Shown one piece after another: positions 3,001 to 63,901 of a DNA stretch of 64,000 nucleotides. A program made the position numbers and the translations under genes. Source of the stretch: Anaeramoeba ignava BMAN (lineage: Eukaryota; Protista; Anaeramoebae); contig JAPDFW010000124.1 in assembly GCA_028826165.1 (NCBI GenBank), forward strand, positions 1 to 64,000. Direction: 5' to 3'. Positions within the stretch are counted from its first letter, which is position 1. Each line of letters begins with the position of its first letter. The notes beneath the pieces were generated by a model. The model was not told where the DNA came from. It made no database searches and worked only from the letters and a program-made list of their open reading frames with translations.

Positions 3001-3276
3001 TGGGAAATTGTTGAATCTTTTGATCAAGAAGAAAGAGCTAAACTTCTTCTTTTTATTACTGGAACTTCTAAAGTTCCTCTTGATGGATTTTCTGCTCTTC
3101 AAGGAATGCATGGTTTACAAAAACTTCAAATTCATAGAACTAGAGATACTGAAAGACTTCCTACTGCTCATACTTGTTTTAATCAACTTGATTTACCTGA
3201 ATATCAAAATTCTCAACTTATGAGAGAAAGATTACTTTATGCTATTAATGAAACAAAAGGTTTTGGTTTTGTTTAA
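1..3276 (+). CDS. 3' part of a HUWE1/Tom1-like HECT E3 ubiquitin ligase (5' end outside the window; several frameshifts)
   Basis: The 2113-3276 ORF has a full HECT domain (F.GEEAVDIGGVTRDW, YFTRSFYKHML, FITGTSKVPLDGF, catalytic LPTAHTCFNQLDLP, C-terminal GFGFV). Upstream fragments include a HUWE1-type UBM-like motif (FVASLPSDLRREVYL, ~165-210) and a pre-HECT segment (FVNTHRKLINDLI..NPSLL, ~2030-2100). Confidence 0.9.
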
Positions 3277-37832: not shown

Positions 37833-39617
37833 ATGAATGATTGTTTATTTTTTGGTTCAAATCAATTTCCAAAACTTATCAAAAATGAACCAAATGAAAT
37901 AACAAAACCAATTCAATTTAAATTTGAAAATGAAAATGAAAATGAAAATGAAAATGAAAAACAAATTAAACAAATTTCATCAGGTTATTATTCAACAATT
38001 TTCCTTTTTAAAAATGGAAAAGCAATAGAATATTTATTTAATTCAAAACAAAATCCTGAAAAAATCCAAATTGAAGAAAATATTCAAAAAGTAACTGTTG
38101 GTTATGATAATGAAGCTATTTTAACAATAGAAAGAAATGTATTTGCCAAAGGATATTATGTTAATTCAAAAAATCCAAATAAATTTATCAATATTTCATC
38201 ATTAATTGAAGATAAAAATGATAGAATAATTCAAGATGTTGTTTCTGGATATGATTCAATTTATTTATTAACTTCAAATCAAAATGCTTATGGAATTGGT
38301 TACAATTTTGATGGTCAACTTGGTTTTGATTCTAAAACACTTCCAAAAACAGAAAAACCAATTTTAATGATGAAAAATGTTTCTAAAATATTTTCAGGAA
38401 ATACTTCATATTCCGTTTTTCTTTTAAATTCAAATCAAGAATTATTTGGATGCGGATGGAATAATTATGGTCAAGTTGGATTAGGAGAATCAATAAAAGA
38501 AAAAAAAATCCAAAAATTAACCAAAATCCAAAATATTCCAAAAGGCAAAATAATTGATATTCAATGTGGATATGATTATTCAATAATGTTGATTGAAAAT
38601 GAAAATGAAAATGAAAATCCAAAAAGAAAACTTTATTCATGTGGATATTGGCAATATAATGGACTTGGCAAAAATGAAGATACTTATGAATTTACTGAAA
38701 TCAAATCATCTTTATTTGAAAATGATGATAATATTCTTGATTTTTCTGTTGGAAATGTTCATACTTTGATTTTAACTTCAAATTCAAAATTAATAGGTTT
38801 CGGTCATAATTTTTCTGGACAATTAGCAACTGGAGATACAAATGATCAAAAATTCCAATTCAAATTGAACTTCCTAAATTAAGATTTAATGAAAATATTT
38901 CTAATTATCATATTTCTTGTGGATATAACAAATCATTTCTTTATTATTCTCCTTTCTTTTTCCAATCTTGAAGAAGATTTGATAAAATTATTTAGAAGAA
39001 AAGAATTTTGTGATATTTCATTTAAAACCAAAAATGGAGAAATAATTGAAGCTCATAAATTAATATTGAAATACAGATTAAATCAAAATAAAAATGAAAT
39101 TGAAAAACTTCAAGAAATTATTTCAAATAAATCAATTAAAGAATCAAATCAAATATTTGAAATGATTTATTCAAACAGAATAATAAATCCAAAATTATAT
39201 TCTGAAATTAAAGAAATTATAAATTCAAATGAAAAAATTGAAGAAACAATGAAAAGAATTTATTTAAATGAAAATGAAAATGAAAAAGATTTTATAATTG
39301 AAAGAAAAGAAAAACAATATAAATTTCCAAAATTAATATTAATAATGAGAAGTGAATTATATCGAGGAATGTTTTTATCTGTAACAAAAGATAAATCTAA
39401 TAAAGTTACAGATTATAGTGAATTAAGTAATAAATCATTTCAAATATTTGAATATTGGATTTATTCAAATCAAATTAAAAATGAAATTCAAATTACACAT
39501 GCAACCATTGATGAAATCAATTAAATCAAATTGGAATTGATTTATTTTTAATTAAAAATTAAAAATCAAAAATTAAAATCAAATTTATTAATTAATAAAT
39601 TTAATAATAAAAACTAA
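37833..39617 (+). CDS. RCC1/BLIP-II beta-propeller + tandem BTB protein (intronless; frameshifts near 38850-38950 and 39520; 3' end approximate)
   Basis: RCC1 repeats (YGIGYNFDGQLG, FGCGWNNYGQVGLG, IQCGYDYS, FSVGNVHTLIL, FGHNFSGQLATG) followed by FCDISFK..IEAHKLILKYR and a second BTB-like domain. Confidence 0.88.
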
Positions 39618-39829: not shown

Positions 39830-42800
39830 TTAATTTTTTGAAAAAGATTTGGAATAAAAATCAATTAAATAAGATCCTAAAATTGAATTTTGATTTAATT
39901 GATAAAAATCTTTTAAATCAGTAAATTCTTCAATATTTTTTTTGGTTAATTTTGTTTCATCAATTTTATCATTATAAAGAAAATAAATTAATTGATTAAT
40001 TGTTTCAAATGATTTTCTTGAATATTCATGAACTTGATTTGATGAATCATTAACATTTAAAAACATTCCTTTAAATAATTCACTTCTTATTTGTAATATT
40101 AATTTATGAACTTTAATTTCTTTTTCTTCAACAATTATTGTAAAATCTTTGGTTTCATTTTCTTGATAAAATTGTTCAAAATCTTTTAATATTCCTTTTA
40201 TTCCTTCTTTTTCTTTAATCCAATTTAAATCAAATCCTGTTTGTTCAAATAAATCATAAGTTAATCCTTTTTGAAATTTTTCATTTTGTTTTTCAATTTC
40301 ATTTAAAATTAATTCTTCTTCTTTTTTTTGATTTTCAAATTCAATTTCATTTGAAAATAAAAATTGAAAATTTGAATCAATTTGTGTTTTTTTTTGAATA
40401 AATTGATTATTAAATTTTTCAATAAATTTATCAAAATCAATAAATCCTGTATAAAGGAAATTTAATGCAAATTGAATAATTTCTTTTGATTTTCTTCTGC
40501 AAATATTAATAAATCTTGTTAAAATTTTTTGATTATTATTAAATCTAATTAATAAAATTTGATTATGAATTTTAATTATTTCATTATCATTACTTTTAAT
40601 TTCAATATCTTTAAATTCATTTGATTTCAAAAAATTGTTTAAATCATCATTAAATGAATAAATTTTTGGAAATAAATCAATTATTTCTTGATTAATTTCA
40701 TTTTCTTTCAATTCAAAAATATTCAAATATCTTATTAATAAAATTATAATTTCATTTGGATAATTATTTTTCAAAGCAAAATGTAAAGGTATTTCATTTT
40801 CATTATTTTTTGAATTAATATCAGAACCTTTGGAAATTAATAATTCAATAATTTCTTTTGAATTTTGATATTTCAAAGCAATATGTAAAGGTATTTCATT
40901 CCAATAATTTTTTGAATTAATATTAGAACCTTTGGAAATTAATAATTCAATAATTTCATTTGAATTTTTATTTTTCAAAGCAATATGTAAAGGTATTTCA
41001 TTCCATTTATTTTTTGAATTAATATTAGAACCTTTGGAAATTAATAATTCAATAATTTGATTTGAATATTTATTTTTCAAAGCAATATGTAAAGGTATTT
41101 CATTTTGGTTATTTTGTGAATTAATATTAGAACCTTTGGAAATTAATAATTCAATAATTTCATTTGGATATTTATTTTCCAAAGCAATATGTAAAGGTAT
41201 TTCATTCCATTTATTTTTTGAATTAATATTAGATTCTTTAGAAATTAATAATTCAATAATTTCTTTTGAATTTTTGTATTTCAAAGCAATATGTAAAGGT
41301 ATTTCATTTTCATTATTTTTTGAATTAATATCAGAACCTTTGGAAATTAATAATTCAATAATTTCTTTTGATTTTTGTATTTCAAAGCAATATGTAAAGG
41401 TATTTCATTTTCTTTATTTTTTGAATTAATATCAGAACCTTTGGAAATTAATAATTCAATAATTTCTTTTGGATTTTTATTTTTCAAAGCAATATGTAAA
41501 GGTATTTCATTCCATTTATTTTTTGAATTAATATTAGATTCTTTGGAAATTAATAATTCAATAATTTCATTTGGATATTTATTTTTCAAAGCAATATGTA
41601 AAGGTATTTCATTCCAGTTATTTTTTGAATTAATATTAGAACCTTTGGAAATTAATAATTCAATAATTTCATTTGTGTATTTATTTTGTAAAGCAATATG
41701 TAAAGGTATTTCATTTAGATTATTTTTTGAATTAATATTAGAACCTTTGGAAATTAATAATTCAATAATTTCATTTGGATATTTATTTTTCAAAGCAATA
41801 TGTAAAGGTATTTCATTCCATTTATTTATTAAATTAATATTAGAACCTTTGGAAATTAATAATTCAATAATTTCATTTGGATATTTATTTTTCAAAGCAA
41901 TATATAAAGATATTTCATTCCATTTATTTATTAAATTAATATTAGAACCTTTGGAAATTAATAATTCAATAATTTCTTTTGAATATTTATTTTTCAAAGC
42001 AATATATAAAGGTATTTCATTTTTATTATTTTTTGAATTAATATCAGATCCTTTGGAAATTAATAATTCAATAATTTCTTTTGAATATTTATTTTTCAAA
42101 GCAATATGTAAAGGTATTTCATTTTTATTATTTTTTGAATTAATATCAGAACCTTTGGAAATTAATAATTCAATAATTTCATTTGGATATTGATTTTTCA
42201 AAGCAAAATGTAAAGGTATTTCATTTTGGTTATTTTTTGAATTAATATTAGAACCTTTGGAAATTAATAATTCAATAATTTCTTTTGAATTTTGATATTT
42301 CAAAGCAATATGTAAAGGTATTTCATTACATTTATTTTTTGGATTAATATCAGATTCTTTGGAAATTAATAATTCAATAATTTCTTTTGGGTATTGATTT
42401 TTCAAAGCAATATGTAAAGGTATTTCATTTTGGTTATTTTTTGAATTAATATCAGATTCTTTGGAAATTAATAATTCAATAATTTCATTTGTATATTTAT
42501 TTTCCAAAGCAATATGTAAAGGTATTTCATTCCATTTATTTTTTGAATTAATATCAGAACCTTTGGAAATTAATAATTCAATAATTTCATTTGGATATTT
42601 ATTTTTCAAAGCAATATGTAAAGGTATTTCATTCCATTTATTTTTTGAATTAATATTAGAACCTTTGGAAATTAATAATTCAATAATTTCATTTTGGATA
42701 TTTATTTTTCAAAGCAATATGTAAAGGTATTTCATTCCATTTATTTTTTGAATTAATATTAGAAACTTTGGAAATTAATAATTCAATAATTTCATTTGGG

Positions 42801-44692
42801 TATTGATTTTTCAAAGCAATATGTAAAGGTATTTCATTCCATTTATTTTTTGAATTAATATCAGATTCTTTGGAAATTAATAATTCAATAATTTCATTTG
42901 GATATTTATTTTTCAAAGCAATATGTAAAGGTATTTCATTTTGATTATTTTTTGAATTAATATCAGAACCTTTGGAAATTAATAATTCAATAATTTCTTT
43001 TGGATATTTATTTTCCAAAGCAATATGTAAAGGTATTTCATTTTGATTATTTTTTGAATTAATATCAGAACCTTTGGAAATTAATAATTCAATAATTTCA
43101 TTTGGATATTTATTTTTCAAAGCAATATGTAAAGGTATTTCATTTTCATTATTTTTTAAATTAATATCAGAACCTTTGGAAATTAATAATTCAATAATTT
43201 CATTTGGATAATTATTTCTCAAAGCAATATGTAAAGGTATTTCATTTTGATAATTTTTTGAATTAATATCAGATTCTTTGGAAATTAATAATTCAATAAT
43301 TTCATTTGGATTTTTATTTTTCAAAGCAATATGTAAAGGTATTTCATTTTGATTATTTTTTGAATTAATATCAGAACCTTTGGAAATTAATAATTCAATA
43401 ATTTCTTTTGAATTTTGATATTTCAAAGCAATATGTAAAGGTATTTCATTCCAATAATTTTTTGAATTAATATCAGAACCTTTGGAAATTAATAATTCAA
43501 TAATTTCATTTGGATATTTATTTTTTAAAACGAATTCTAAAGGTGTTTCATTTTGATAATTTTTTGAATTAATATCAGATTCTTTGGAAATTAATAATTC
43601 AATAATTTCATTTGGATTTTTATTTTTCAAAGCAATATGTAAAGGTATTTCATTTTGATTATTTTTTGAATTAATATCAGAACCTTTGGAAATTAATAAT
43701 TCAATAATTTTATTTGGATATTGATATCTCAAAGCAATATGTAAAGGTGTTTTATTTTGATTATTTTTTGAATTAATATTAGAACCTTTGGAAATTAATA
43801 ATTCAATAATTTCTTTTGAATTTTGATATTTCAAAGCAATATGTAAAGGTATTTCATTCCAATAATTTTTTGAATTAATATCAGAACCTTTGGAAATTAA
43901 TAATTTAATAATTTCTTTTGGATTTTGATATTTCAAAGCAATATGTAAAGAATTATTTCTGTTTTTATCATTCCAATTTAAATTTGTTTCTTTTTCAATA
44001 AGTTTTTGGATAATTTCTTTTTTTGATTTATTTTTAAAAGCATAATTTAGAAAAGGTTCATTTTCTTTTTCAAATTGTTCTGTTGTTTTTAAAGTTGGAA
44101 TTGAATCAATGAATTTAATATTATTTGTTTTTATTGCTTTATAAACTTTTTTTAATTGATTTGTGTTTTGATTTATGTTTTGATTTGTGTTTTGATTTGT
44201 GTTTTGATTTATGTTTTGATTTATGTTTTGATTTATAAATTGATCGAGATAATGTTTTAACAATTGATTTGTGTTTTGATTTATGTTTTGATTTATGTTT
44301 TGATTTATGTTTTGATTTATGTTTTGATTTATGTTTTGATTTATGTTTTGATTTATGTTTTGATTTATGTTTTGATTTATAAATTGATCGAGATAATGTT
44401 TTAACAATTGATTTATATTTTGATTTATGTTTTGATTTATGTTTTGATTTGTGTTTTGATTTATGTTTTGATTTATGTTTTGATTTGTGTTTTGGTTTAT
44501 GTTTTGATTTATGTTTTGATTTATGTTTTGATTTATGTTTTGATTTATGTTTTGATTTATGTTTTGATTTGTGTTTTGATTTATGTTTTGATTTATGTTT
44601 TGATTTATGTTTTGATTTATGTTTTGATTTATGTTTTGATTTGTGTTTTGATTTGTGTTTTGATTTATGTTTTTATTTGTATTTGAATTCAT
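39830..44692 (-). CDS. Intronless ankyrin-repeat + tandem BTB protein, with an N-terminal (NINQ)n tract, ~31 34-aa ankyrin repeats and two BTB-like domains; two frameshifts (~42690, ~41370)
   Basis: The 102-bp repeats encode NEIPLHIALKNKYPNEIIELLISKGSDINSKNxx. The C-terminus is closely similar to 12430-13306 (YSFNxDLNNFLKSNEFKDIEIK; KGLxYDLFEQTGFDxNWIKEKEGIKGILKD). Confidence 0.9.
44155..44680 (-). repeat. 12-bp coding minisatellite (CAAAACATAAAT)n = (QNIN)n
   Basis: Read directly; includes a duplicated LLKHYLDQF insert. Confidence 0.93.
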
Positions 44693-47242: not shown

Positions 47243-48798
47243 TCATTTCTTTGATTTCTTATTCATATGAGCTTTTAACCAATCAAGACCTTCTTTTAAA
47301 CCATCACCAGAAATAGCACAAGAAGTTTGAACAAACCAAACACGATCTTTAAGACTAGAAAGTTTGAGTTTTTCAGTAATTTCATCAGCTGTCATTGGAT
47401 TTGGTAAATCTTGTTTATTTGCAAGTATTAAAATAATTGCATCTTTAAGTTCTTGGTTTGTCATCATACTCGTAAACTCTTTAGTCGCTTCATCTATACG
47501 ATCACGATCACTACTATCGATAACAAATACTATCGCCTCAGTGTCTTCGTAATAATGTCTCCAAAGTGGTCGAATTTTATCTTGTCCTCCAACATCCCAA
47601 ACTGTGAATTTGACACTTCCATATTTTACTTCTTCGACATTGAAACCTTTTTTTTCCAAATTTTTAATTTTAATTTTTAATTTTAATTTTAATTTTAATT
47701 TTAATTTTAATTTTAATTTTAATTTTAATTTTAATTTTAATTTTAAATTTTATAAATGAATTTTAATTTTAATTTTGATTTTAATTTTAATTTATTTTAA
47801 TTTTATTATTAATTTTAATTATAATTTTAATTTTTAATTTTAATTTTAATTTTAATTTTAATTTTAATTTTAATTTCAATTTTAATTTAAATTTTAATTT
47901 TAATTTTAATTTTAATTTTAATTTTAATTTTAATTTTAATTTAAATTTTAATTTTGATTTTAATTTTGATTTTAATTTGAATTTTAATTTTATAAATGAA
48001 TTTTAATTTTGATTTTTAATTTTAATTTTAATTTTAATTTTAATTTTAATTTTAATTTTAATTTTAATTTTAATTTTAATTTTAATTTTAAATTTTATAA
48101 AATGAATTTTAATTTTTAATTTTAATTTTAATTTTAATTTTAATTTTAATTTTAATTTTAATTTTTAATTTTAATAAAAATTAATTTTTAATTTTAATTT
48201 TAATTTTAATTTTAATTTTAATTTTTAATTTTTAATTTTAATTTTAATTTTAATTTTAATTTTAATTTTTAATTTTAATTTTAATTTTAATTTTAATTTT
48301 AATTTTAATTTTAATTTTAATTTTAATTTTAATTTTAATTTTAATTTTAATTTTAATTTTAATTTTAATTTTTAATTTTAATTTTAATTTTAATTTTAAT
48401 TTTAATTTTAATTTTAATTTTAATTTTAATTTTAATTTTAATTTTAATTTTAATTTTAATTTTAATTTTAATTTTTAATTTTAATTTTGATTTTAATTTT
48501 AATATTAATTTTAATTTTTAATTTTAATTTTAATTTTAATTTTAATTTTAATTTTGATTTTAATTTTAATTTTAATTTTAATTTTAATTTTAATTTTTAA
48601 TTTTAATTTTGAATTTAATTTTAATTTTGATTTTTAATTTTAATTTTATTTTTAATTGAGTTTTTATTTACCAACCGTTGGTGATGTTTCAGTTGCTTTC
48701 TTTTTTGATAATTTTAATAATGTTGTTGTTTTTCCTGCTGAATCTAATCCAACCATTAAAACTCTTAAAGTTTTATTTTTTGAAAACCATTTTCCCAT
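47243..48798 (-). CDS. ADP-ribosylation factor (Arf) family GTPase. Exons: 48798-48672, 47646-47243
   Basis: MG myristoylation start, [40 protein letters not shown] and SCAISGDGL. Confidence 0.95.
47660..48655. repeat. Intronic (AATTTT)n
   Basis: Fills the Arf intron. Confidence 0.93.
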
Positions 48799-49059
48799 TT
48801 TGTTTTGTTTTATTTTTTTTTGTTGTTGTTTTAAAAATTGAAAAAAGTATTCAAAATCCAATTTAATGAAATTTTGTTTTTTTTTTTTAAATGGAGAATG
48901 ATGTAAAAAAAAATAAAGATAAAAGAAAAAAAGATCAATAAAAAAAAATAAAAGAAAAAAGAAAAAAAATGATTTTAAATAAAATTAAAAAAAATTTTTT
49001 TCTTTTAATTAATAAAAAAGGAGAAAAAAAAAAAGGAGAAAAATTAAATATTTTTTAAT

Positions 49060-50760
49060 TAATTTTTTAATCAATAATTTAATTAGATTTAAATATAATT
49101 TAATTAATAATTTTATTTATAATTTAATTTTAAAATTAATTCCACTTTTTTTAATTAATAATTTAATTCAATTTTTAATCAATAATTTAATTAGATTTGA
49201 ATATAATTTTATTTATAATTTAATTTATAATTTAATTTTAAAATTAATTCCACTTTTTTAATTTATAATTTAATTAAATTTTTATCAATAATTTAATTAG
49301 ATTTGAATATAATTTAATTTATAATTTAATTTATAATTTAATTTTAAAATTCATTCCACTTTTTTTATTTATAATTTAATTAATAATTTAATCCAATTTT
49401 TAATCAATAATTTAATTAGATTTGAATATAATTTTATTTATAATTTAATTAATTTAATTAATAATTTTATTAATAATTTAATTCAATTTTTAATCAATAA
49501 TTTTAATTAGATTTGAATATAATTTTATTTATAATTCAATTTTAAAATTCATTCCATTTTTTTAAAATTTAATTAATTTTTTTATTTAATAATTTAATTC
49601 AATTTTTAATCAATAATTTAATTAGATTTGAATATAATTTAATTTATAATTTTATTTATAATTTAATTTTAAAATTAATTCCACTTTTTATTTATAATTT
49701 AATTAATAATTTTATTAATAATAATTTAATTGATTTAAATATAATTTCATTTATAATTTCACTTTTTATTTAATTTTTAAAATTAATTCCAATTTTTTAT
49801 TTATAATTTAATTTTAAAATTAATTCAATTTTTTTATTAATAATTTAATCCAATTTTTAATCAATAATTTAATTAGATTAGAATTAATTCAATTTTTTTA
49901 TTAATAATTTAATCCAATTTTTAATCAATAATTTAATTAGATTAGAATATAATTTAATTTATAATTTTATTTATAAATTAATTTTTAAATTTAATTTAAT
50001 TAATTTTAATATTTATAATTTAATCCAATTTTAATCAATAATTTAATTAGATTTGAATATAATTTTAAAATTTATAATTTAATTTATAATTAATTAAAAA
50101 TTTCATTCCACTTTTTAATTTATAATTTAATTCAATTTTTATCAATAATTTTAAATAAGATTTTTAAATAATAATTTTAATTCATAATTTAATTTAATTA
50201 TTTTTAATTAATTTTTAGATTTGAATATAATTTAATTTATAAATTATTTTTAAAAATTCATTCCACTTTTTATTTATAATTTAATTAATTTTAATCCAAT
50301 TTTTAATCAATAATTTAATTCAGATTTTATTTATAATTTAATTCAATTTTAATCAATAATTTAATTTTTAATTCATTTAATTTAATTTATAATTTAATTT
50401 ATAAATTAATTTTAAAATTAATTCCACTTTTTATTTATAATTTAATTAATAATTTGATTCAATTTTTATCAATAATTTAATTAGATTTGAATATAATTTA
50501 ATTTTAAAATTCATTCCACTTTTTATTAATAATTTAATTTTTAATCAATAATTTGAATATAATTTTATTTGATTTATAATTTAATTTTAAAATTCATTCC
50601 ATTTTTATTAATAATTTAATTCAATTTTAATCCAATTTTTATCAATAATTTAATTTGTAATTTAATTTTAAAATTCATTCCACTTTTTTTATTTATAAAA
50701 TTTAATTTTTAATCAATAATTTGAATATAATTTGATTCAATTTTTTATCAATAATTTGAA
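49060..50760. repeat. Degenerate complex satellite with a ~100-bp unit
   Basis: Recurring blocks TCAATAATTTAATTAGATTTGAATATAATTT and TTAAAATT(A/C)ATTCCACTTTTT. Confidence 0.85.
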
Positions 50761-50845: not shown

Positions 50846-53800
50846 TTAATTTGTTCGTTTCCTTAAAGTTCTTTCAATTGATTTAAAAATTTCAAGTGAA
50901 TTTGATATTAAAAATTTGTGTTCAATATCAAATTTTTCTTCAATTTCTTTATAACCATTTGATTCTTTTTCTTCAATTGAAAAAAGAAATAAATCCCGAA
51001 ATGAATATGCTGGATTAATATTATCATTAAGTTTTATAAGAAATTCCTTTAAATATTCAAAAAATTGATTAGTTTCTTTCATTTTTTTAATAGAATTTTC
51101 CAATTCTAAAGCTTGAAAAGATGTTAATTCTATTCTAAATTTTTCTGGTAAATTCTCTAAAACGGTTTCAAAATCAATTTTCAAATCATTCCAAATAAAT
51201 AATAAATGTTTCAATTTCACAAATTTTGAGAATTCAATTAATTTTGCTTGATTGATTCCAGTAAAATTTTCACTTTCAATTTTTTTTTGAAAAAAATCCA
51301 TAATTCCCATTTCTCTCAATTCTTGTCTCTTTTCTTCTGTATTTTTCTTCATGTTAATTCTCTTGCAACTTGAAATCACAAATTTAATTAATTCGAGAAT
51401 TGTTTTGTTTAAATTATTTTGTGTTAATTCTTCTTTGATTTTAAATAAATGAAATTTTTTTAATTTCTCTTGTTTCCATTCTTCAGTTTCAAGGAATTCT
51501 GTTTTAATTTCAGGTTTTTCATTTAAAAATTGAAAGTCTTCAATCACATTTTTGTAATATTTAAATTTCTTTAAATAACTTAATTTCTTGAAAATATATT
51601 CTTCAATTAAATTCAATTCATTATTTATCTCTCCAATGTAAATAAATCTGCTAAATTCTTCAAAATCAAAACGAACAAATTTTGTAAAATCAACTTCAGT
51701 TTCTAAAAATGGTAAATCTACTTGAATTTCAGAAAATTCTTTTTCTTTTTCTTTTTCTTCCAATTTTTGGAAAAGATTTTGTAATAATGGTGATTCAATC
51801 ATTTCATTATGAATATTTATTGAATGATCAATAAATATTGAAATCATTAAATTGTAAATCTTTTTTTCTGTTAAGCAATAATCAATGAAGTTTATTTCAT
51901 TTATTTTAATTGGAATATTCGATTCATTTTTAATATCTTTTAAAACCATTAAATATTTTACTTCTGATATAATAAGTTCCCAAAATTTTTTAAATGATGA
52001 AAAATATTCTTGAACATCTTCTTTTTCATTTTCAAATAATTCTTTGATAGTAATTTGATTTGATTTCTCTTTTTCATTTTCAAATAATTCTTTGATAGTA
52101 ATTTGATTTGATTTCTCTTTTTCATTTTCAAATATTTCTTTGATAGTAATTTGATTTGATTTCTCTTTTTCATTTTCAATTAATTCTTTGATAGTAATTT
52201 GATTTGATTTCTCTTTTTTGATCTTTTCAATTAATTCTTTGATAGTAATTTGATTTGATTTCTCTTTTTTGATCTTTTCAGTTAATTTTTTAATTAAAAA
52301 ATTTGCAAATTTCATAAATCCTTCAAATAAATTCAATATCATCAAATTTTTTTGATTTGAAATTATAAACTCAATCAATGGATAATTATCTTTTTTTTCT
52401 GTTGTTTTTTGTTGATAAAATAAATTGATTATTGAATAGAAATCTGGTTTTGGTAAATCAAATAAATTTAATTTTTGGGATTTTTGTTGTAATTTTCTCC
52501 AAATTGGATCTTCTGCTTTATTTTTGATTTTATTCATTATAAATTGATGTTTTTCATTAACAACATTATTGAAAAATGTTTCAAATGAGTTTCTTGCTTC
52601 AGTTTCCTTAAAAAAATCTTTATTTAGTAACAACTTTGGAATTTTCAAATCTAATAATATATTTAATGTTTCATGGAAATAATAAATTGCTCTATTAATT
52701 GGAGTATTGATTAATTTTGATAAAATCGTTAAATCATTCTGAATATGACCAAATAATTGTTGAATTAATTCTTCTTTGCTTTTCGGTTTAAAAACACAAT
52801 TATTGATAAGCTGAATGAAAAAATTAGAAAACTTATCAGATATTATTGAAACAGAAATAATAGATAAATGCATCAATAATCGAATTATTCTGAAAGTAAT
52901 TGGGTTCATTTCTCTTAATGTATATCCTATATTTTCATTTGGAAATTTGGAAACTGAATAAGATAATAAATTTTCAAAAAAATTCTGTTTAATTTCCTTT
53001 TCTTGTAATTTTGATTTGCAAAATTCACACCAATTTTGTAATTTAAGTTTGGAAAATTTAATAAAATTCAAATGCCCTTTTTCACAAATTTTCCAATTTT
53101 TTGTTTCTTTTCTAAATTCTTTATTGAATGGATGAGATCCCATTGTTGGCCAATATAAATTTTCAAGTTTTTCTTTTTTTAATCCTTCTTCTCCAACTTC
53201 AAATAATAGATCTGATGAAAATAAAAATCCAAAAGGTTCAAGTTTTAAATAATTAAGAAATTCAATAGAATGAATTGCCATTTTGAATACTTCTTTGCTT
53301 TCAAATTGTTTTTCAATATTCCAAAAATGAGAATAAATTTTTGAAAGAAGATAACTTGTATTATATTCAGAAGGAAATGAAACATGAGATTTTTGGAATT
53401 GTGTTGATAAATCATTTCCCATTTGTCTTTGCCCATAATAATATAGTAATGAAGTTTCTTTTTTCTTTTCTTGAATATTAATTCTAATCAAATTTTCTTT
53501 TATTGATAATAAAATAGATTGTGAAATTGAATTATTTTTTAACTTTTCAGGAATTTCATTTTGGATAAAATGTATCAACTGTAATCTTCCTTTTGATTTT
53601 TCAATTTCATTAAAAATAAACTTTAACCATTCTTGCCCTGTTTTTTTCGATAAACTATTTTTGAAACTTGAAGTAAATTTCTTTGGATTATTTAAACATT
53701 GATTGCGTTTTCGTATAAATTTGATAATTTTAGAAAGAGGAAATCCATCTTGGATATAAGCCACTATTATATTTGTTGGCTTATTTTCTTTTGATAATTG

Positions 53801-56800
53801 TTTATTATTATTATTATTTGAGATTATAATTTTTTGTAATTTTTCATCTTCATTTATAACTTTAACACATGAATAAAGAATAGCATTTTCTGGATTTGTT
53901 CTTATTATTTTTAAATTCTTTTCACTCATCTTTTTATCAATAAATTCCAATAATTCTTGTTGGTATTCTTGATTTTCTTTTATTATAGAAAATAAATTCC
54001 TCAACATTTTTTCGTGTATCAAATAAAACATATTTTCCATATTCATCATTGAAAACATTATTCCTTTTTCTTTTAAATATTCTTCAAATTTGTCTATTAA
54101 TTGAAACTCAAAATTTCCTTTTGTTTCCTTTTCTAAAATGAATTTTTGTGAAATGAATTCTGAATAATCTATTAAATATTCTCCAAATTTTTGGAAAACA
54201 TCTTCAATTTCTTTCCTGTATTTTTGAATATTCCTTTCTCGTATTTTTTGGAAATGTGTTTGATCTGCTCTTAATCTTTTCCCACAAATATTACATTTTT
54301 TCTCATTTATATTTTCTTCAAGTGTTAAATAAATCAATTTTTTTGCTTTTTGAGATGGTTTACAAATGTAAATTTTTTGATAACCAGATTCTTCACAAAA
54401 TAATCTTTCAATTAATTCTTTGGATATTTTATCAATCATCATCTGTTTTTCATTATTTTCCAAAATATTTTCTTTTTCATTCATTTGTAATTCATTTTCA
54501 TTTTGATTTTCTTTTTGATTTTGATTTTGATTTTGATTTTCTAAAAAGTTTTCCATAACTTCAATAATAACATATTTAAATTTTTTCAATATAAAATTTT
54601 GGAATGATCCTCCATTATTTTGTTTTGATAATTTTTTAAATCCCATTCAGAACTATAATCATTTTCTTTTATAATTGTCTCTATTTCATTGAAAAAATTA
54701 TCTGATTGATTTCCCAAAATTTTTTGTTTTATTAAATTGTTTTTTTTGAAAATTTCTTGTGTTAAATCAATTATTCTTGAAAGAGCTATTTTAAATACTT
54801 GCTCACAAATTGATTTTAATTTTCCAAATTTTTTTAATTCTTCAAAATAATCTATTGATTCTGTTGAATTTGGATTTGGAATGTCTACTTCTTTTGTAAA
54901 TGTATCAAGATATGAATATTCCCAATTTTTTTCAAAATTAAAACTAAAATTAAATCTTTTTTTTATAATTTGGTAATAAATGAATAATGAATATCACATA
55001 ACAACTTTTTCCTTTTGATATAATCAAATTTTCATTTTCAATTTCAATTTCATTTTGATTATTATTATTGTTTTCATTTTCATTTTCATTTTCATTATTG
55101 TTGTTATTGCTTTCAGAAAATTTGTGATCAATCATCATTTTCATTTCATAAAAACTCTTCATTTCATTTTGTTTAACATCAATAAATAACACAAATTTAT
55201 CATTTTTTTGTTCATCTTGGATTTTTTGAATTAAATATTCTTTGTTTTTAATTTTTTCTAAATATTCAATTTGAAATGAATAATCAGTATTTTGTTTTTG
55301 AATATTTTGAATATCAATTTCTTCATATTGTGTAATAATGATCCATTTCTTTTTCTCTTTTTTTACAATTTCTTCTTGAAATAATTCACTAAATCCTCTT
55401 TCAAATTTGGTAAAATAATATTTTATATTTTCTTCAATCTTTTTTTGAGCTTGATCAATCTCTATTTCTTTTTTAGTTTTGGATAATGAAGATTTTTGTT
55501 TTTGTGGCTCTTGTTTTTGATTTAATAAATAAATTTCAATCATTTGTTCAATTTTAAAAAATTCAATTAATTTATTTTTCATTAATTTCAATATTTTCTT
55601 TTCTTTTTCTTCTTCTTTTTGATACTTTAAAATAAGTGAATATATCAAATTTTCATTATATCCAATAATTAATTCTTCATTACTAATTTCATTTTTTTGT
55701 ATCTTTTTTATTGGTTTTATCAACTCTGTTTCAATTTTTTGCTTTAAATTTAAATATTTTTCCAAATTTTGAAAATAAGAAAGATCAAAATAATATTTCT
55801 CAAAAAAGCTTAATAAATAAGGTTGATTGAATTCATATTTCATTGCTTTTGATGTAATAATAATTAATTTGAAATTTGGATGAATATTGATTTTTTCTGT
55901 TTTTTCATTAATGGAAGAATAAATATAAGTTTTATAATTTTGTTTCAATAAATCATATATTGCATTATATATTTTTTGATAATTAAAAATAACTAATGTT
56001 TCACCATTTTGTACACATTTTTCAATTTTCTCCAAATTAAAATTTAATTCATTTTCTTTTTTTGTTTCAAAAATTAAAACTGAATTATTGAAAAAATTTT
56101 CATAAAGAATTGAGAAAATGGAAACATCTGGAATAAATATCATCAAATGTCTTGATATCTTTTCAAGGTTGTTATTATCATTATTATTGCTAATTTCTTT
56201 TAATAATTTGATTAAATCAAATTTAGGTATATCAATAAATTCTTCTATATTTTCACGTTTCAAGATATTATTTAATATATTTTCTCTAATTCCAAAATGT
56301 TTAAAAAGAGATTCAAAATAAATATCCGAAAATTGCTTTTTTTGTTGTTCATTTGAAATTGAATATCCAATATCTTTAATAAATGAATAATAATCTTGAA
56401 TTCCATAAATTTGATTTGAAGGTTTTCTTCCTTTTAATATTTGAACAAATTGTTTGGAAATTATTTTACTTTCATTTCTATAAATTCCTGATAAAATTTT
56501 AACCAAAAATTTGATTTGATAATCTGCAATGTTTTTGGAAAATGATTTCAAAATACTTTCTGTTGTTTGTTCTAATTCATATGTCTCCATTCTTTCCAAT
56601 TTTAATTTGATATATAAAATTGGTAATTGAAATTCAGAATTTGATAAAATTATTACTGATGGTTTTATCAACTCATTATTTTCAATTTCAGAACAAAAAG
56701 TTATTAAAACTTCTTTTTTCAAAACATTAATTTCTTTTAATGTGATAACATTTATTGTATTTTCATCAATTTCTTTACTAATTTTCTTAAATATATCTTT

Positions 56801-59800
56801 AATTTTATTTGATTCAATTAATTTATTACTTGGAATTTCAAATTCTTTTAAATGTGGAAATGAAAGTGAAAATTTTGGTTTATTTTCTTTATCTCTTTGA
56901 TTGAATAATTCCAAAATAAACTCAAGACTTGTTACTTTTGAACTTCCTATTTATTATTAAGTAAATTAATAAATAAATAAATAAATTTGATTTTTGTTTT
57001 TTGATTTTACCTGATTCTCCAATTATATATAAAGGAATTTGACTAAAACAACAAATAAATATGAAAAAAATATTTTCTTTCAATCTTTGATTAATTCCTA
57101 TATGTTTTTTTTCTGCTTTATCTTTAATATCAAGTTTTTCAATTAAATTTTCTATCATTGAATCAAGATATTTTTGAATATCAATTTTTTTAAAATGTTC
57201 CCTAATTTCTCCAACATCATATTTCTTGAGATATTCTTTTAGATTTTGAAAGAATTGTTGTTTATTTGATTTTGGTTTGAATTTGTATTCATAAACAACA
57301 AATAAACTAATCAAAATAGATTTTGTAATTCTTTCAAATAAATATTCTATATCATTTTCTTTTTGATTTTCTTTTTGATTTTGATTTTCATTTTGATTTT
57401 GATTTTGATTTTCTAATTTTATATCAATCTCATTGTTTAAAATCCATTTAAATATTTTGAGAAATATGGATAAATTTTCATTTTCATTTTCATTTTCATT
57501 TAAATTTAAATTTTCATTTTGAATATAATCTTGATAAAATAAAAATAATCTTTTAATTAATAAATTTACACTTTTTGTAATTGAATTTTCTTTTAATTTT
57601 TTAAATATTTCAAGCTTTTCAAGTACTTTATAAATTATAAGAGAAGTAATTGATTCTTCTGATTCAATTGATTTTCCAAAATCATAAATATCTTCAAAAA
57701 ATGAATCAGGAATAACTTGTAATTTTGAAATGATGTTTTTATCAATTTCTTTTCTTTGATATTTATTTTTATTTAGATCTTTACTATCATATTTATTATA
57801 TTTGTTTACTGAAAAGGATTTAATTGAAGCTAATAAATTGATTTGATTTGATATCCTTGTATCTTTAATATAACGTTCTAATAAAATTTCCTTCAATAAA
57901 ATAATACATTCTTTTGATCCTCTATTAATTTCATCAAAGAAAACATTGATTTCTGAACTTGGAGTTACAAATTTTTCAGCTGTTGTAATAATATTAATAA
58001 TTTCTTCTGGTTTTGTTGTTGGTTTGATTTTTTGAATCAATATTTCTTGTTTCATAATTTCTTCAGAAAGATATTTAATCATAAATAATCTTTCTTTTTT
58101 ATTTCCTCCTTCAAAAATAACAGGAAGTTTTGCAAATAATTTAAATTGGATATATAAAAGTTTCATAATATTAATTGGATTGAATATAAATTCTCTTATT
58201 TTTTCATTTTTTTCATTTTGATTTTGATTTTGATTTTCATTTTGATTTTCATTTTTAATAATTGATTTGAAATTTAAATTTAGATTTTTAATTTCATCAT
58301 TTTCATAAAAATTTAGTTTTTATCAAAATATTTTTGAATGTTTTGATCAAATAAATTTTTGATTTTTTGATTGCTTATTAAATTCATTTCAATATCATTT
58401 TCTCTAATATTTGAAAATATTGGTAAATAAATCATTCTATCTTCCCATTTAACTTTTTCTTTTAATAAAGTAGAAAAATATTCCAAAATATTTGAATTAG
58501 AATCAATATCTTTTGTGCTCCATTTAAGAAATCTTGCCACAATATTAATAATTGAAAAGAAATAAAATTTCAATAAATTTCCAAAATATTTCTTCATAAT
58601 TGTTTCATCCTTATTTTGAAAGTTTTCTATTGAAAAATAATCATTCAAGAAATTAATATTCCTTTTCAAAATTTGTGTAAAATTCATTATTAATCTATAA
58701 GTTAATGGTTGACCAGGAAGCTTTTCTGAAAATCTTTTTTGAATAAATTTGAAAGTTTCTTTTTCATCTTTAATATTTTTTCTGTTTTCAAATTCTTGGA
58801 AATAATCAATATTTTGTTTAATAAATTGAGCAACTTCGTTCATTTTTTGTTTATGCTCATCATCTTCAATAATTTCAAAAGATTGATTAAGTTTATATTT
58901 TGTAAAAGAAAATTCATTTGAAGAGAATTGGCATTGCTTTTCTTCTAACCATTTTAAAAGTGGAAAATCATTTAATCCATTTTCTGAATCTTTTTTACGA
59001 TTACTTGGAATTTCAAAAGAAAAAAAATAAGATGGATCTGAATTCCAAATGAAATTATTTGTAATTTTTCTTTTGCTTTCAACTAAATTCCAAATGATTA
59101 AATTCCAAATTAAATTCATCATTTTCAAATTTGGTAAAAAGTATAATTTGATATGTAAATATTTGATAATATTTTCTGGATTATCAATTTTGAAATGTGG
59201 TGAATAATTGATTTTATTAAGATATTCGTTAATTTTTTCAATAAATTCAATTGGATTTCCATTTGTAATGAAAATTTGGAAATATTTATTTTGGTTTTCT
59301 TGAGATTTTTGATAAATTTCTTTTTGAATTTGATAGGTTTTTCCCATTCCAGCTAATTGTGAAGTAAAAACTTTTTTGTTTTGATAAAATTTAGATTTTG
59401 ATTGAAATATTTTTTTGATAATTTTTGTAGAAAGAGGATTGATTTGACATGATATTAACGAATAAGGAAAATTCTTAACAATATCAAAACTTCCAATATT
59501 TTTTTCATAAAAGAAAATTATTAAAGGAAAACAAATTTCTTTTTCATAATTAATTTTTTCAAGTTCTTGTAATAAAAATTTAGAACATTTTTTTGATAAT
59601 CTTTGTGAATGAATAATTGAAAACAAATATTTTTGATTTTGATTTTGATTTAAATAAAATAATTTGTTATAAAATTTGTAAATATTAATAAATTTTTCAA
59701 TATCTGATTTCTTTGTTTGATTAAAATCACATATCAAAACATTCTCTTTTAATGGGAAATGTTTGCAATATCCAAAATAAAGAGTTGTAATAATTTCATA

Positions 59801-62800
59801 AACTTCAATTTCATTTTCTAATTTATAAAAGAAAAATTTGGTTTCTTCAATTGAATTTCCATATTGTTCAAAAATTTGGTTAAATTTATTTTGATTTTCA
59901 ATTTCAAATTCAAATTCAATTTCAATTTCAATTTTTCTTTGTTGGATTGTTTCCTGTATTAATTTAAATTCATCTTTAATATTTTCAAATTCTTTGGTTT
60001 TAATTTTATCAAAGAAATTATATAATTCTGAAAAATTATTCAAATTTGAATTTTCCAATATTTTTTGAAAAGATGATTTTAATGATTTGAATTGATCAAA
60101 ATTTAAATTAGGATAAAACGAACGAATAAGTTGGAATGAATTTTGGATAATATTTTCTTCATTTTGATTTTGAATATTTTTTAATGAATTTTGGATAATA
60201 TTTTCTTCATTTTGATTTTCATTATTTTGGAATGAATTTTGAATAATATTTTCATTTTGATTTTCATTATTTTGGAATGAATTTTGAATAATATTTTTTT
60301 TTTCATTTTGATTATTTTTTAATGAAAGTCCATTAAATATTGAATCAAGTTGTTCTTCTGAAAAAAGTAATTGGAAATATTTTAGAAATTCTTTTATTAC
60401 TTGAACTAAAATATCTTGAAATTCTTGTAATGAAGCTTTTTGTTTTTGTCTTTGTTTTAAATAATTGTTTGCTTTTTCCCAAATGTAAATTCGAAAAATA
60501 TCCCAATTCTTTAAATGATAAATTTTCGAAAAGAAATTTAAATCAATTCCTAAATCTTGGATAGATTGTTCAACTTTTGTAATTGATTTTGTTTTATTTA
60601 TTTCTTTTTAATTTGATTCATTTTTGAATGATATTTCAATTTTATTATTTTCTTGCATAATTTTTTCAATTTCTCCAGATTTTTGAAAATTTTTAATTAC
60701 AAACTGAATATTTTCTCCAATTTCTTTATTTATTTTACCAAATTTTGCTATTTTTCTATTGATTCCTTTATAGATTGATTTATTGTATTATATTGTTCAA
60801 AATTTTCAATTGATAATTTAATTTCTTCATTTATTTCATTTATTTTTATAAATAATTTTTTCATATTCGGATTTTGTTCTTGAAACTTCTGAGATGATAT
60901 TTGAAAAAAATTAATTGATTGATTCAATTCATTTGCTAATTGCTGAAAAAAACGAATTGCATTTTCAAAAATTTTATTTGAAGTTTCAAATTCATCAATC
61001 ACATTAGAGATATTTTTTTGTATTTCTTCCTTTTCATTGGATTGTTTAATTTCCAAACTTCTCATTATTTGAATTCTTGTGTTAATTTCTTGATTAAATT
61101 TGGGAAATAAAGTTTTAAATTGTGACAATTCAATTTTTTGGAATTGATCCAAATTTTGTTCAAGGGATAAAATAACATTTTCATTTAAGCAAGTTAAAGT
61201 TGCAAATTCTTGACAAATTGTCTTATAAATTAATAAATGTTGAAGTTTTTGTTGAAGGACTTGAGATAAATAATCTAAAAATAAATTGTAAATTTTTGGA
61301 TACAATGGATCATTTTTTGGTAATATTGGAGTGAAAGGAAATGTAATATTTTGAGAATTGGGGTTTGGTTGGAAAAAATTTTGGATATTTGATAAATAAT
61401 TTTGGAGATTTGATGATAAATTATGATCTGAACTTATTAATTCTTGAGGGATTTTTTGAAGTAATTCCATATCAGAAAAATATTCTTCTAAAATTTGTTT
61501 TGGTTGATTTTGATTTGGGGAAATTTTCACATTTTTATTTTGAATAAATGATTTGCATTTATCTTGTGTAAATTCAGAAATAAATTTTCTAAGAAATTCT
61601 GGAGAGTCTTTTATCAAAAGATGGATTTTTGAATTAATAATCGTTTCTAAGCAAATTTTATCTGTTTGATTTTGGAAAAAACGTTGATTTTTGATATTCT
61701 CACAAATTTGATCTTCTATTGAATAATTTTTCTTTTTAATTTTAATTTTTTCCTTTTGAAGTTGTAATTGTTTATCATTTTGAATATTATTTTGTTTCTG
61801 GGTGTTTTCTCTATCAAAGAAAGAAGTATCTGATGATCATTATCATTATAAGAATTCTCATTATCAAATGTATTGAAATTTTGATAAAATTCTTTCCAAT
61901 AATCATAACATTGATCTAAATCTTGGAATTGAAATTTTGAGATGATTTTGATTATGAAAACGTTAGAACTAGTCTTAATGAAATGGTTCAAAATTTGCTG
62001 TTCAAATGTGGAATTTTGGTGAAAAAGTTGTGAAGAAAAAGTACTTTTTTTATGAAATTTTGGATTAAAAAAATCCCATTTTTGAAAATTTGGTTCAGAA
62101 ACTCTTGGAAAATCTTGGAATAGATGGATTTTTTGGTGGAAATTTTCTATAAATTTATTATCAAAATGTGAGAAATGATCTGTAAAAAATTTCAATTTTT
62201 GTTGATTTTTGTTTGGAAATAAATTTGGTAAATATCTGTGAAGTTGTATAAATTTTCCAATCGAGATTTTTTTAGGTTTAATTTTATTAACCAATTTCTG
62301 TATTTGTAAGGTTTTTTTGACAGAATTTTTTATATTTTGTGTCAATAAATATTCCCAATCATTTGATCTTCCCAAATACATTTTCAAAAAATCTGATTTA
62401 ATATTCATTTCTAGTTCTTTATCTTGAATCAATGATTTGAAAAATTGTTCAATAGAAAAATTTAATTTGTTGCTTTTGATTAATGGAAAAATATATTTAA
62501 TAAATGAAGTTATTCCTTCCCAAAAAGCATTTTCCTTTTTTTGTTGAGAATCATTTTGAAAATTTTCATGTAATTCAAATTTATGTATTGCTTTAATAAA
62601 ATTGAGAAAAATTGGAATTGGTTTTTGAATTTCTTCTGGATTTTGAATAAAAAAATAAAAGGAATTTTCTTTTTCAATTTTTTCTTCTTTCTCAAAAATT
62701 CCAGAAATTTTAAGTGTTTGTTGTTCTTTTTCAATATTTTTTTCAATATTTTTTTCAAATGAAGCAAAATAAATTTCATGATATTTTCTGGATCTTTTTA

Positions 62801-62882
62801 TTCTATTATTTGGAATTAGTTGGAAAAACAAATAATTTGAATTATTTTGTTTTTTGTTTGGAAAAATATAAATTTGAAGCAT
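50846..62882 (-). CDS. RNF213/mysterin-like giant protein (~4000 aa): N-arm, dynein-like AAA+ core and E3 module with RZ finger. One intron (57010-56947); several frameshifts
   Basis: Motifs occur in RNF213 order: ENVLIC, TSQLAGMGKT, NIMKLLYIQFKLFAKLPVIFEG, VFFDEIN, LKENIFFIFICCFSQIPLYIIGESG|SSK, YGIQDYYSFIK, SRHLMIF, KCVQNGETLVIFNYQKIYNAIYDLLKQNY, IHPNFKLIII, FEKYY, IIGYNE, WEYSYLD, YWPTM, CEKGH...CEFC, MNPITFRIIRLLMHL. Confidence 0.88.
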
Positions 62883-62964: not shown

Positions 62965-63901
62965 TTAAGCGAAAAAAGTTTCTAAAATTGAAAATGTTTT
63001 TTGATAAATTTCTTCATTTGGATGAGTTTGAAGTTGTTCAATTTTTTCAATTAAATTTGCTTCTTCCATTCTTTCTATCATTGGTGAATTTTTAACTGAA
63101 TTTTCTTTTTTCAAAATTTCTTCAATTAAATTTAAAATTGTAAGAATACTTTCTGTATTATCAATTTCAATTAAAGAAGTTATTTTTTTGAAGAAGTTTG
63201 TTGAGAAAATTTCACTAAAAATACAAATATAAATTTTAATTTCAAAATGAATTTTTTATCCGATTTTGAAATTTTAAAATAAATTTTGAAATAAATATTA
63301 ATTTTAATTTTAATTTTAATTTCAATATTAATATTAATTTTTAATTTTAATTTTAATTTTAATTTTAATTTTTAATTTTAATTTTAATTTTGATTTTAAT
63401 TTTAATTTTAATTTTAATTTTAATTTTAATTTTAATTTTAATTTTAATTTTAATTTTAATATTAATTTTAATTTCAATATTAAAATAAATTTTAAAATAA
63501 ATTTTAATTTTAATTTTAATTTTTGTGATAAAAACCTCATTTGATTTGAATTTGCATTCTTTATCATTTTAATTAAAAATGAAAATATTAAAATTCTAAT
63601 TTCATTTGAAGAATCCATTTCTAATTCTAATAAATTTATTAAAATTTTCCCATCAAGATATTTTTGAATAGAATTTTCATTTAAAGAAGAATTTGAGAGA
63701 ATTTTAATAATTCCTTCAGTTGCTTTTCTTCTTTTCCAAACTAGAATATTCTTAAATGGTTCTAAATTCTTTAATTCCATAATTTCATCTGAAATTCCTT
63801 CATCCATTGAAAAAATTATTGAAATTTGATTCAAACAAATAATTATAATTTCATATCCAATTTTTTCTCTTGGATTTACATCAATTTTTTGTTGTAATTT
63901 T
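62965..63901 (-). CDS. 3' exons of an importin-alpha-like ARM-repeat protein (exons 63901-63536 and 63214-62965; continues beyond the window)
   Basis: The last exon encodes MEEANLIEKIEQLQTHPNEEIYQKTFSILETFFA*, matching the importin-alpha C-terminal atypical ARM motif. The upstream exon is helical and ARM-like but divergent. Confidence 0.72.

Follow-up and report, generated by a model that had tools for sequence, protein, structure and literature searches.

A catalytically degenerate RNF213-like giant gene of Anaeramoeba ignava and the multi-copy clade to which it belongs

RNF213 has been studied as a single-copy immune ubiquitin ligase of vertebrates and as the gene of Moyamoya disease. Here, we describe an RNF213-like giant gene in a 64,000-nucleotide stretch of the genome of Anaeramoeba ignava BMAN, a free-living, symbiont-hosting anaerobic amoeba (contig JAPDFW010000124.1, positions 1 to 64,000; the window). 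The gene lies on the minus strand, with its ATG at 62882, its last codon at 50849-50851, and its stop codon at 50846-50848 (coding span 50849..62882). Judged by its predicted protein, it is an RNF213 homologue that falls short of an active RNF213 enzyme, since both of the ATPase sites that are active in RNF213 and the nucleophile of its ligase finger appear to be lost. We favor, at a probability of about 0.6, the interpretation that it encodes a pseudoenzyme of RNF213 descent, that it is an intact member of a clade of such genes, and that its product likely serves as a noncatalytic target-binding or assembly subunit.

The relationship to RNF213 was established with searches that used open reading frame (ORF) pieces, exon pieces, and the GenBank model P0002. 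When the 414-residue ORF that contains the AAA3/AAA4 exon (56922-58166) was compared with all PDB chains by phmmer, RNF213 was the sole match (E 6.6e-5), with 'LPVIFEGGNKKERLFMIKYLS' aligned on 'IPVIIMGETGCGKTRLIKFLS', 'FFDE' on 'FFDE', and 'IPLYIIGESG' on 'IPLFLVGKPG'. The piece carrying AAA4/5 (54953-56944) matches residues ~2985-3274 of RNF213 in the PDB (E 2.1e-14), and a profile built from the upstream piece (58316-60607) with its paralogues matches PDB RNF213 over a region covering AAA2 (E 3.6e-25). Within the A. ignava genome, the gene is colinear with residues 773-4174 of a canonical paralogue, C70, itself a single ORF of 4182 residues (tblastn E 5e-61 to 2.6e-48). This colinearity extends to the C-terminal 1266-residue ORF, which corresponds to C70 residues 3027-4174 (E 2.6e-48). 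C70 has RNF213 matches of E 4e-57 and 8e-47 that take in the RZ finger and C-terminal domain; the homology of the C-terminal part of the window gene to RNF213 is thus transitive, through C70. In addition, the modules of the dynein-like AAA core follow one another in the same order (AAA2, AAA3, AAA4, AAA5) in the window gene, in RNF213, and in C70.

Altogether, the PDB matches and the colinearity with C70 indicate that the colinear RNF213 scaffold, which had been proposed in an earlier reading of the DNA made from the letters alone (the sequence-only reading), is real, and they support the classification of the gene as a true RNF213 homologue. The scaffold shared with the mammalian structures (PDB 6TAX/6TAY, 7OIK/7OIM, 8S24, 9G08, and 9JW1) comprises AAA2, AAA3, AAA4, and the AAA4/5 region, together with the RZ finger and C-terminal domain via C70. 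Other searches were negative. The six ORF pieces gave nothing significant in Pfam and no RING match, phmmer against the PDB found no match for the N-terminal 764-residue piece or the C-terminal 1266-residue piece used alone, and the ESM Atlas returned no usable match for the N-terminal 388 residues. A protein search with the C-terminal ORF recovered only the window's own protein, as the candidates were swamped by low-complexity words.

In mammalian RNF213, AAA3 and AAA4 are the sole hydrolysis-competent units, and AAA2 binds ATP as a "glue" (eLife 2020, PMC7311170). [quoted passage not shown] At AAA3, both the PDB match and the family alignment place FEGGNKKER (58089..58115, minus strand, as for all gene features below) where canonical members have (L/M)GETGCGKT. 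The Walker A motif is destroyed, as EGGNKKER stands in place of GETGCGKT, Lys is replaced by Glu, Thr is replaced by Arg, and the glycine pattern is gone. The AAA3 Walker B motif, VFFDEIN (57924..57944), is kept. The AAA4 Walker A motif is split by an intron into IIGESG and SSKVTS (56927..57026; exon parts 57009-57026 and 56927-56944). Compared with canonical GKPGSSKS, the window's GESGSSKV keeps GxxGxxK and has Val in place of the Mg-binding Ser/Thr that follows the Lys. Finally, the AAA4 Walker B position reads VITLKEI instead of VVILDEV (56729..56749), with Asp changed to Lys and Glu kept.

Other subgroups of dead-type paralogues differ in detail at the same positions. Their AAA3 Walker A reads IEGNDYEK or NGGNEYEK, and their AAA3 Walker B reads LFNDFN or YFHEFN, against FFDEFN in canonical paralogues and FFDEIN in the window. 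At AAA4, they carry GNSGTSKS or DNLAISKK for Walker A and IILKEF, IILKNF, or IILKD for Walker B, where canonical paralogues have VILDEV and the window gene has ITLKEI. The Lys in the AAA4 Walker B motif is common to all dead-clade members that were read (ILKE, ILKD, ILKN). The upstream P-loop of AAA2 is intact in the window protein (AGMGKT, 59336..59353), and the profile that gave the AAA2 match aligns it to RNF213 'AGVGKS'. Among readable paralogues, the AAA2 motif xGxGKT[YF]QI is kept in 6/6 dead-clade and 7/7 canonical members, and all six of the former carry the form [A/S/P]GMGKTYQI. The sequence-only reading had listed these same states, namely an AAA3 without Walker A and with FFDE, an AAA4 with GESGSSKV and without the Walker B Asp, and an intact AAA2 P-loop. 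All of them were reproduced, and the alignment leaves neither an intact K-[ST] at AAA3 nor an intact DE at AAA4.

The experimental literature gives these changes a functional meaning. Human RNF213 alleles K2426A and E2488A (Walker A and Walker B of AAA3), K2775A and E2845A (Walker A and Walker B of AAA4, where the Walker B Asp is D2844), and C4516S are loss-of-function alleles, and a single Walker A or Walker B mutation in either AAA3 or AAA4 kills RNF213 function (bioRxiv 10.1101/2024.09.24.614677). By its sequence, the window protein therefore carries natural equivalents of several experimentally dead alleles together, with AAA2 and the zinc ligands spared.

The second site of loss is the RZ finger, which together with its YWPxM lead-in spans 53012..53155 (finger itself 53012-53086). 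In human RNF213, C4505, H4509, C4525, and C4528 are the zinc ligands, C4516 is the proposed nucleophile, and H4537 is the general base; the C4516S protein ubiquitylates no target tested (bioRxiv 10.1101/2024.09.24.614677). The window finger (CEKGH-LNFIKF-S-KLKLQNW-CEFC) follows the pattern C-x3-H-x6-S-x7-C-x2-C, so that the C, H, C, C zinc ligands are kept at aligned positions. The nucleophile position is Ser, and there is no Cys from the His to the CxxC. A direct comparison with the canonical paralogue illustrates this further: C70 reads C-PNG-H-PFYINN-C-TWPMEVLQ-C-RE-C-GVQIGGHD-H, and the window protein reads C-EKG-H-LNFIKF-S-KLKLQNW-C-EF-C-KSKLQEKEI. Thus, the Ser noted in the sequence-only reading was recovered, and the general-base His has gone as well, with Ile at CxxC+9 where it would be expected and no His nearby.

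Not every reduced feature of the ligase module is specific to the window gene. Its RING is a remnant (YICKPS...CNICGKRL...H, 54272..54370) reduced to C...CxxC...H, with no complete C3HC4, and it had been taken as a sign of degeneration. The reduction itself is confirmed. Since the fully canonical C70 carries the same reduced RING, however, it is a trait of the lineage rather than decay of the window gene, and the RING is in any case dispensable for RNF213 activity (PMC7311170; bioRxiv 10.1101/2024.09.24.614677). Similarly, loss of the RZ nucleophile is not confined to the window gene. Paralogue C57 (L015+L022) has canonical AAA3 and AAA4 Walker motifs and an RZ finger of the window gene's type, which keeps C, H, and CxxC without the loop Cys and the His, and C46 (L011+L019) has canonical AAA3/AAA4 motifs and an RZ finger without the ligand His and the nucleophile. 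These two paralogues show that ligase and ATPase losses are uncoupled in the family.

The residues that survive raise the question of whether the protein is still an enzyme, with altered chemistry. AAA4 could bind or slowly hydrolyze ATP, and the RZ Ser could accept ubiquitin in oxyester linkage, as happens in ubiquitin-conjugating enzymes and ligases engineered from Cys to Ser, which would produce a slow or self-trapping ligase. Consistent with this, the AAA4 Walker Lys is kept in three dead subgroups, the Walker B Glu is kept in the window subgroup, and AAA3 keeps FFDE. The retained zinc ligands imply that the finger should fold, and the Ser sits exactly at the nucleophile position rather than being a random residue there. 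Nevertheless, the same Cys-to-Ser change and single AAA3 or AAA4 Walker mutations each abolish the function of human RNF213, the general-base His is missing too, and the AAA3 P-loop is without any glycine-rich loop. Moreover, every dead-clade member has Lys in place of the Mg2+-holding Asp of the AAA4 Walker B motif, and other subgroups also replace the adjacent Glu (ILKD, ILKN). We therefore consider residual catalysis unlikely.

Comparison with better-known systems places these losses in context. Like mammalian RNF213, the window gene would encode a single polypeptide of ~4,000 residues with the AAA2 P-loop, the AAA3 Walker B motif, and four RZ zinc ligands; it differs in the AAA3, AAA4, RZ, and RING positions described above, in an N-terminal third that is unrelated by sequence (neither the stalk nor the CBM20 region is matched), and in being one of many paralogues where RNF213 is a single gene. 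The canonical A. ignava paralogues (C70, C128, and C13) share its architecture, reduced RING, AAA2 motif xGxGKT[YF]QI, and YWPxM lead-in, and are 23-27% identical to it over ~3,400 aligned residues. C70 and C128 have GETGCGKT, FFDEFN, GKPGSSKS, VVILDEV, and a complete RZ finger (C, H, nucleophilic C, C, C, H), whereas the catalytic residues left in the window protein are the AAA3 Walker B motif and the AAA4 Lys and Glu only. Relatives in Pelomyxa schiedti (KAH3743879.1), Andalucia godoyi, Stygiella incarcerata, Polarella glacialis, and Haliotis rubra belong to the same family and have canonical AAA3/AAA4 Walker A motifs and, at Walker B, the form hhhhDE. ZNFX1 shares the RZ-type zinc finger, but it is built on a superfamily 1 helicase core rather than a six-AAA ring and has no homology outside the finger. 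Dynein and Rea1/midasin likewise keep degenerate AAA modules as structural or regulatory units, nucleotide-binding or empty. However, dynein and Rea1 retain at least one motor module, whereas in the window gene both modules that are active in RNF213 and the ligase nucleophile are hit. Going by its motifs, the whole window protein appears inert.

The window gene is not an isolated case. A search of the 42.8-Mb genome with the AAA3/AAA4 exon gave 108 matches at ~75 places. A degenerate DNA pattern for GETGCGKT found 52 loci (reversed control, 0), and a pattern for the dead AAA3 P-loop found 13 exact loci and one with a single mismatch, all 14 at RNF213-like places. The RNF213-like family of A. 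ignava therefore comprises ~66-75 loci, about 2% of the genome, of which at least 14 are dead. By the sequence of the dead P-loop, these fall into GGNKKER (three loci: the window gene, C125, and its near-identical copies, C66 and C137), [E/G/D]GNDYEK (seven loci: C1:654662, C4, C35, C59, C61, C111, and C138), GGNEYEK (three loci: C64, C127, and C140), and GGSYYEK (one locus: C93:830398). Neither AAA3 pattern matches about eight further loci, among them P0006 with GETGCEKT and VILDK.

A quick maximum-likelihood tree built on 82 rows of the AAA3-AAA4 region groups the eight dead sequences included into one clade with a Shimodaira-Hasegawa-like approximate likelihood-ratio test (SH-aLRT) support of 100 and a long stem of 0.99 changes per site. 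This clade is nested within a radiation restricted to A. ignava (SH-aLRT 93), and the paths between dead subgroups reach 1.8 changes per site. In two of its members, C138 and C64, the exons are open and the intron occupies the same position. Furthermore, among 91 cluster representatives drawn from 1.84 billion proteins, a destroyed AAA3 P-loop occurs in A. ignava proteins only. The A. ignava representative P0006 shows milder changes, and those from other organisms (including Pelomyxa, Andalucia, Stygiella, Polarella, and Haliotis) all keep canonical or near-canonical AAA3 and AAA4 motifs. The single clade and its restriction to A. ignava indicate that the catalytic motifs were lost once in this lineage and that the affected genes were then kept for a long time and duplicated repeatedly. 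Scored in this way, with 52 canonical against 14 dead AAA3 P-loops, the family bears out the earlier proposal of a retained paralogue with dead motifs, but not the idea of a single one, as the gene belongs to a monophyletic clade with at least 14 loci.

The closest relatives of the window gene are the copies at C66:1-8300 and at the end of C137, which are 96-97% identical to it. C66:1-8300 and C137:843500-854813 both adjoin contig ends and overlap over ~7 kb at ~98% identity. They may represent one unjoined locus or a pair of alleles, which puts the number of copies at two or three.

We next consider whether the gene is intact. In the deposited assembly, the frame is interrupted at several places, which the sequence-only reading had listed as frameshifts to be fixed by polishing. 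One interruption is a single true intron of 64 nucleotides (56947..57010; GT-AG, phase 1) within a glycine codon of the AAA4 Walker A motif. In a spliced contig (X3 record 20), 57010 is followed directly by 56945; this junction is the predicted one slid by one G. Distant paralogues have an intron at the same position (C64, L008 ~1518-1581; C57, L015 ~8017-8041). Because the intron divides the motif, searching the DNA for an uninterrupted GKPGSSKS pattern recovers just 10 loci. With the intron removed and homopolymer errors allowed for, the minus-strand ORF chain amounts to ~3,990 codons at ~19% G+C, and its start codon is also present in the C137 copy. An alternative, ciliate-type genetic code was ruled out, as ORFs of 1,000-4,000 codons are open in the standard code.

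The remaining seven breaks (~61800, 60755, 60625, 60607, 58321, 54960, and 54637) are differences of 1 to 2 nucleotides in poly-A runs relative to the copies, and the three copies disagree at these runs in both directions. The genome paper gives Nanopore R9.4/R9.5 reads as the source of the assembly and ABruijn, Racon, Nanopolish, and two Pilon rounds as the software; in such an assembly, some homopolymer errors should remain, chiefly where repeats are nearly identical. To examine the breaks, we aligned short-read (Illumina-type) contigs of three public runs (X1, X2, and X3; assembled contigs, not raw reads) over 54400-60300, and these restored the frame at all three breaks covered. At 54631..54637, contigs of X1, X2, and X3 have one base more in the A-run, the length of which differs among the copies. 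At 54956..54963, where the copies also differ, contigs of X1 and X3 have one base less, indicating that the A8 should be A7; all 18 X3 contigs there are in frame and none has the shifted version. At 58316..58322, one A is missing, as an X1 contig and both sister copies have the additional base. Upstream of the coverage, C137 has 1, 2, and 1 additional A at the three differences in 60605..60760 (~60755, 60625, and 60607), which brings the region into one frame; the differences at 60625 and 60607 create an apparent in-frame TAA. The change of frame between the first two ORFs (61790..61810) is probably a homopolymer error as well. A 1176-residue ORF of C137 runs through this point in one frame and is open across all four breaks beyond the read coverage.

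Therefore, the gene is intact with a single intron, and its frameshifts are mostly Nanopore poly-A errors; they are not damage to the gene. At least one of the near-identical copies is transcribed. Furthermore, ~3,990 codons without a substitution-type stop in 81% A+T DNA argue for selection, as a random frame of this composition would, by an estimate from base composition, meet a stop roughly every ten codons. For comparison, the A. ignava genome as a whole is 80.65% A+T (genome paper). The proposal that the gene is retained rather than decaying is thus upheld by the open frame, the spliced contig, and the transcribed copy group.

These observations bear directly on the possibility of an ordinary pseudogene, in which the window copy or the whole trio was recently inactivated, the frameshifts are real, and the transcripts come from another copy. 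Seven frame breaks stand in the assembly, the ratio of nonsynonymous to synonymous substitution rates (dN/dS) among the three copies is 0.67-0.86, the frame-restoring contigs show variants of the C66 or C137 type at numerous positions, and two of the copies lie at contig ends, all of which could fit such a scenario. On the other hand, every break is of the kind typical of Nanopore R9.4 error, the copies disagree both ways, and all three covered sites are in frame in the short-read contigs, 18/18 in X3 at 54956. Neither the lack of substitution-type stops nor the age of the motif losses, which are clade-wide and separated by up to 1.8 changes per site with open exons and an AAA2 P-loop, would be expected after a recent inactivation. 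A pseudogene is accordingly improbable in our judgment.

The fragmentation has also affected the public annotation. In GenBank, the gene is broken up into three or more "hypothetical proteins," including a middle one, P0002, of 1133 residues and a C-terminal one, P0001, of 1236 residues. P0002 (KAJ5067887.1, 'hypothetical protein M0811_12805 [Anaeramoeba ignava]') is the best public representative of the gene and contains the true splice. The annotation also creates a false intron, between ISKGK and KVDIPNPN, that steps over the homopolymer error at ~54960.

The copies differ most at their N-terminal end. A module of ~360-400 residues (61791..62882, delimited by comparison with C137) is hypervariable, with 49% amino acid identity between the window copy and C137 (stretch L014:2654-3850) against 85-97% for the remainder of the gene; at the DNA level, copies are 79% identical or unalignable. 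The copies are mosaics in this respect, possibly with a swapped or fast-evolving recognition end. In primate RNF213, the region that corresponds to the variable module is under positive selection (bioRxiv 10.1101/2024.09.24.614677), and the combination of variability and location is suggestive of a recognition end in A. ignava. A second variable element may lie in the C-terminal E3-module region, where a tandem array of ~13-16-residue units (...EKSNQITIKELFENEK...) occupies 51960-52300 (minus strand); from secondary blastn matches, its copy number is seemingly unequal among the three gene copies.

Taken as a pseudoenzyme, the protein would work as follows. It would fold as an RNF213 scaffold and bind nucleotide statically, probably at AAA2 and perhaps at AAA4. 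The AAA3/AAA4 ATPase cycle would not run, and no ubiquitin would be accepted on a thiol. Many molecules of mammalian RNF213 are incorporated cooperatively into a coat, for which the ATPase is needed (bioRxiv 10.1101/2024.09.24.614677), and on the model of this cooperative action, we consider a noncatalytic role in assembly or targeting most likely. As a target-binding or assembly subunit, the protein would join or modulate assemblies of the ~50 catalytically canonical paralogues, with specificity carried by the hypervariable N-terminal module.

Several points weigh against this interpretation. First, dN/dS values (Nei-Gojobori method, NG86) are 0.67-0.86 among the three near-identical dead copies and 0.5-1.27 among the dead copies C138, C4, and C35, which on few changes is indistinguishable from neutrality and similar to the canonical pair C1/C104 (0.5-0.65); older canonical pairs give 0.11-0.39. 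Second, the short-read contigs combine the three copies in mosaic form, so the restored frame and the splicing hold for the copy group and not uniquely for the window copy, and four of the seven breaks were checked against a sister copy only. Third, the run with the spliced contig is indexed 'DNA?' and was taken as RNA on the basis of the splice and of the genome paper's statement on polyA RNA-seq. Fourth, the tree is a quick version, and the dead sequences in it are compositionally deviant. Fifth, the RZ state within the dead clade was read for the window subgroup (C125, C66, and C137) only. Finally, co-assembly with active paralogues is drawn by analogy to mammalian RNF213. With respect to the first point, recent duplicates evolve fast family-wide, so dN/dS does not separate dead from live copies. 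Constraint is argued more strongly by the ~3,990-codon open frame and by the fact that AAA2, the zinc ligands, and numerous flanking blocks are conserved throughout the deep dead clade.

A more elaborate version of the subunit interpretation, again by analogy, is a division of labor like that of sensor and helper nucleotide-binding leucine-rich repeat receptors (NLRs). The ~50 catalytic ligases would execute, and the at least 14 inert members with hypervariable N-termini would act as sensors, nucleators, or brakes that place the coats. Such coats might form on prey, on pathogens, or on the sulfate-reducing symbionts of the symbiosome; the bacterivorous, symbiont-hosting protist supposed in the sequence-only reading is indeed what A. 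ignava is. We regard this NLR-like arrangement as tentative. The sequence-only reading had offered a sensor, a scaffold, or a dominant-negative regulator of antibacterial ubiquitylation as candidate roles; these stay conjectural, and none of the present results connects the family with bacteria. Less likely still is a specific form of the decoy or dominant-negative idea of that reading, in which the dead paralogues are decoys or guards that mimic active ligases and bind bacterial or viral factors aimed at RNF213-like proteins: a scaffold preserved with catalysis removed, multi-copy birth-and-death dynamics with a hypervariable N-terminus, a host that lives with intracellular-type symbionts (genome paper), and the direct targeting of mammalian RNF213 by pathogens (Shigella IpaH1.4) would all suit it, but nothing in the sequence tells a decoy from a structural subunit, and a clade so far diverged from the canonical paralogues (stem of 0.99 changes per site) would mimic them poorly.

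Elsewhere in the window, the neighborhood is rich in ubiquitin-system genes. An ORF at 2113-3276 (plus strand) has a complete HECT ubiquitin-transferase domain (Pfam, E 1.1e-94). Very long ankyrin-repeat arrays lie at 5362-11801 (plus strand) and 39830-44692 (minus strand), with Ank_2 scores of >1000 bits; there are two ankyrin-BTB genes, and at least one array is fused to a BTB domain (39830-41284). An RCC1-repeat gene (37833-38882, plus strand) and a PUF-repeat gene are also present. The gene directly upstream of the RNF213-like gene (62968-63255, minus strand) ends in '...IEKIEQLQTHPNEEIYQKTFSILETFFA' followed by its stop codon, which by eye resembles an importin-alpha C-terminus, and 86 nucleotides of almost pure A/T separate that stop from the RNF213-like start codon. 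Downstream, the intergenic DNA at 48001-50000 has a G+C content of 6.7%, extreme even for the A. ignava genome, and similar troughs occur at 24-26 kb and 34-36 kb of the window.

RNF213-like giants are widespread in eukaryotes and partly auto-named in public databases, so that RNF213 homology as such is already known and not new. RNF213 is mentioned neither in the main text of the A. ignava genome paper nor in those papers of the library searched that name Anaeramoeba. What appears to be unreported is the size of the A. ignava family and the existence of a long-lived, multi-copy clade without both active ATPase sites and, in the window subgroup, without the ligase nucleophile. One practical consequence follows from the assembly: as homopolymer errors fragment these giants in public annotation, family counts and domain statistics for A. 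ignava are unreliable.

For the question of how RNF213 couples its ATPase ring with coat formation and with ubiquitin transfer, A. ignava provides a natural experiment, as its long-retained dead clade bears the very changes that experimenters introduce to kill the protein (at the Walker lysine and at the equivalent of C4516S) with the AAA2 "glue" site spared. It makes testable whether the RNF213 scaffold has functions independent of catalysis and whether RNF213-type proteins may work as mixed assemblies.

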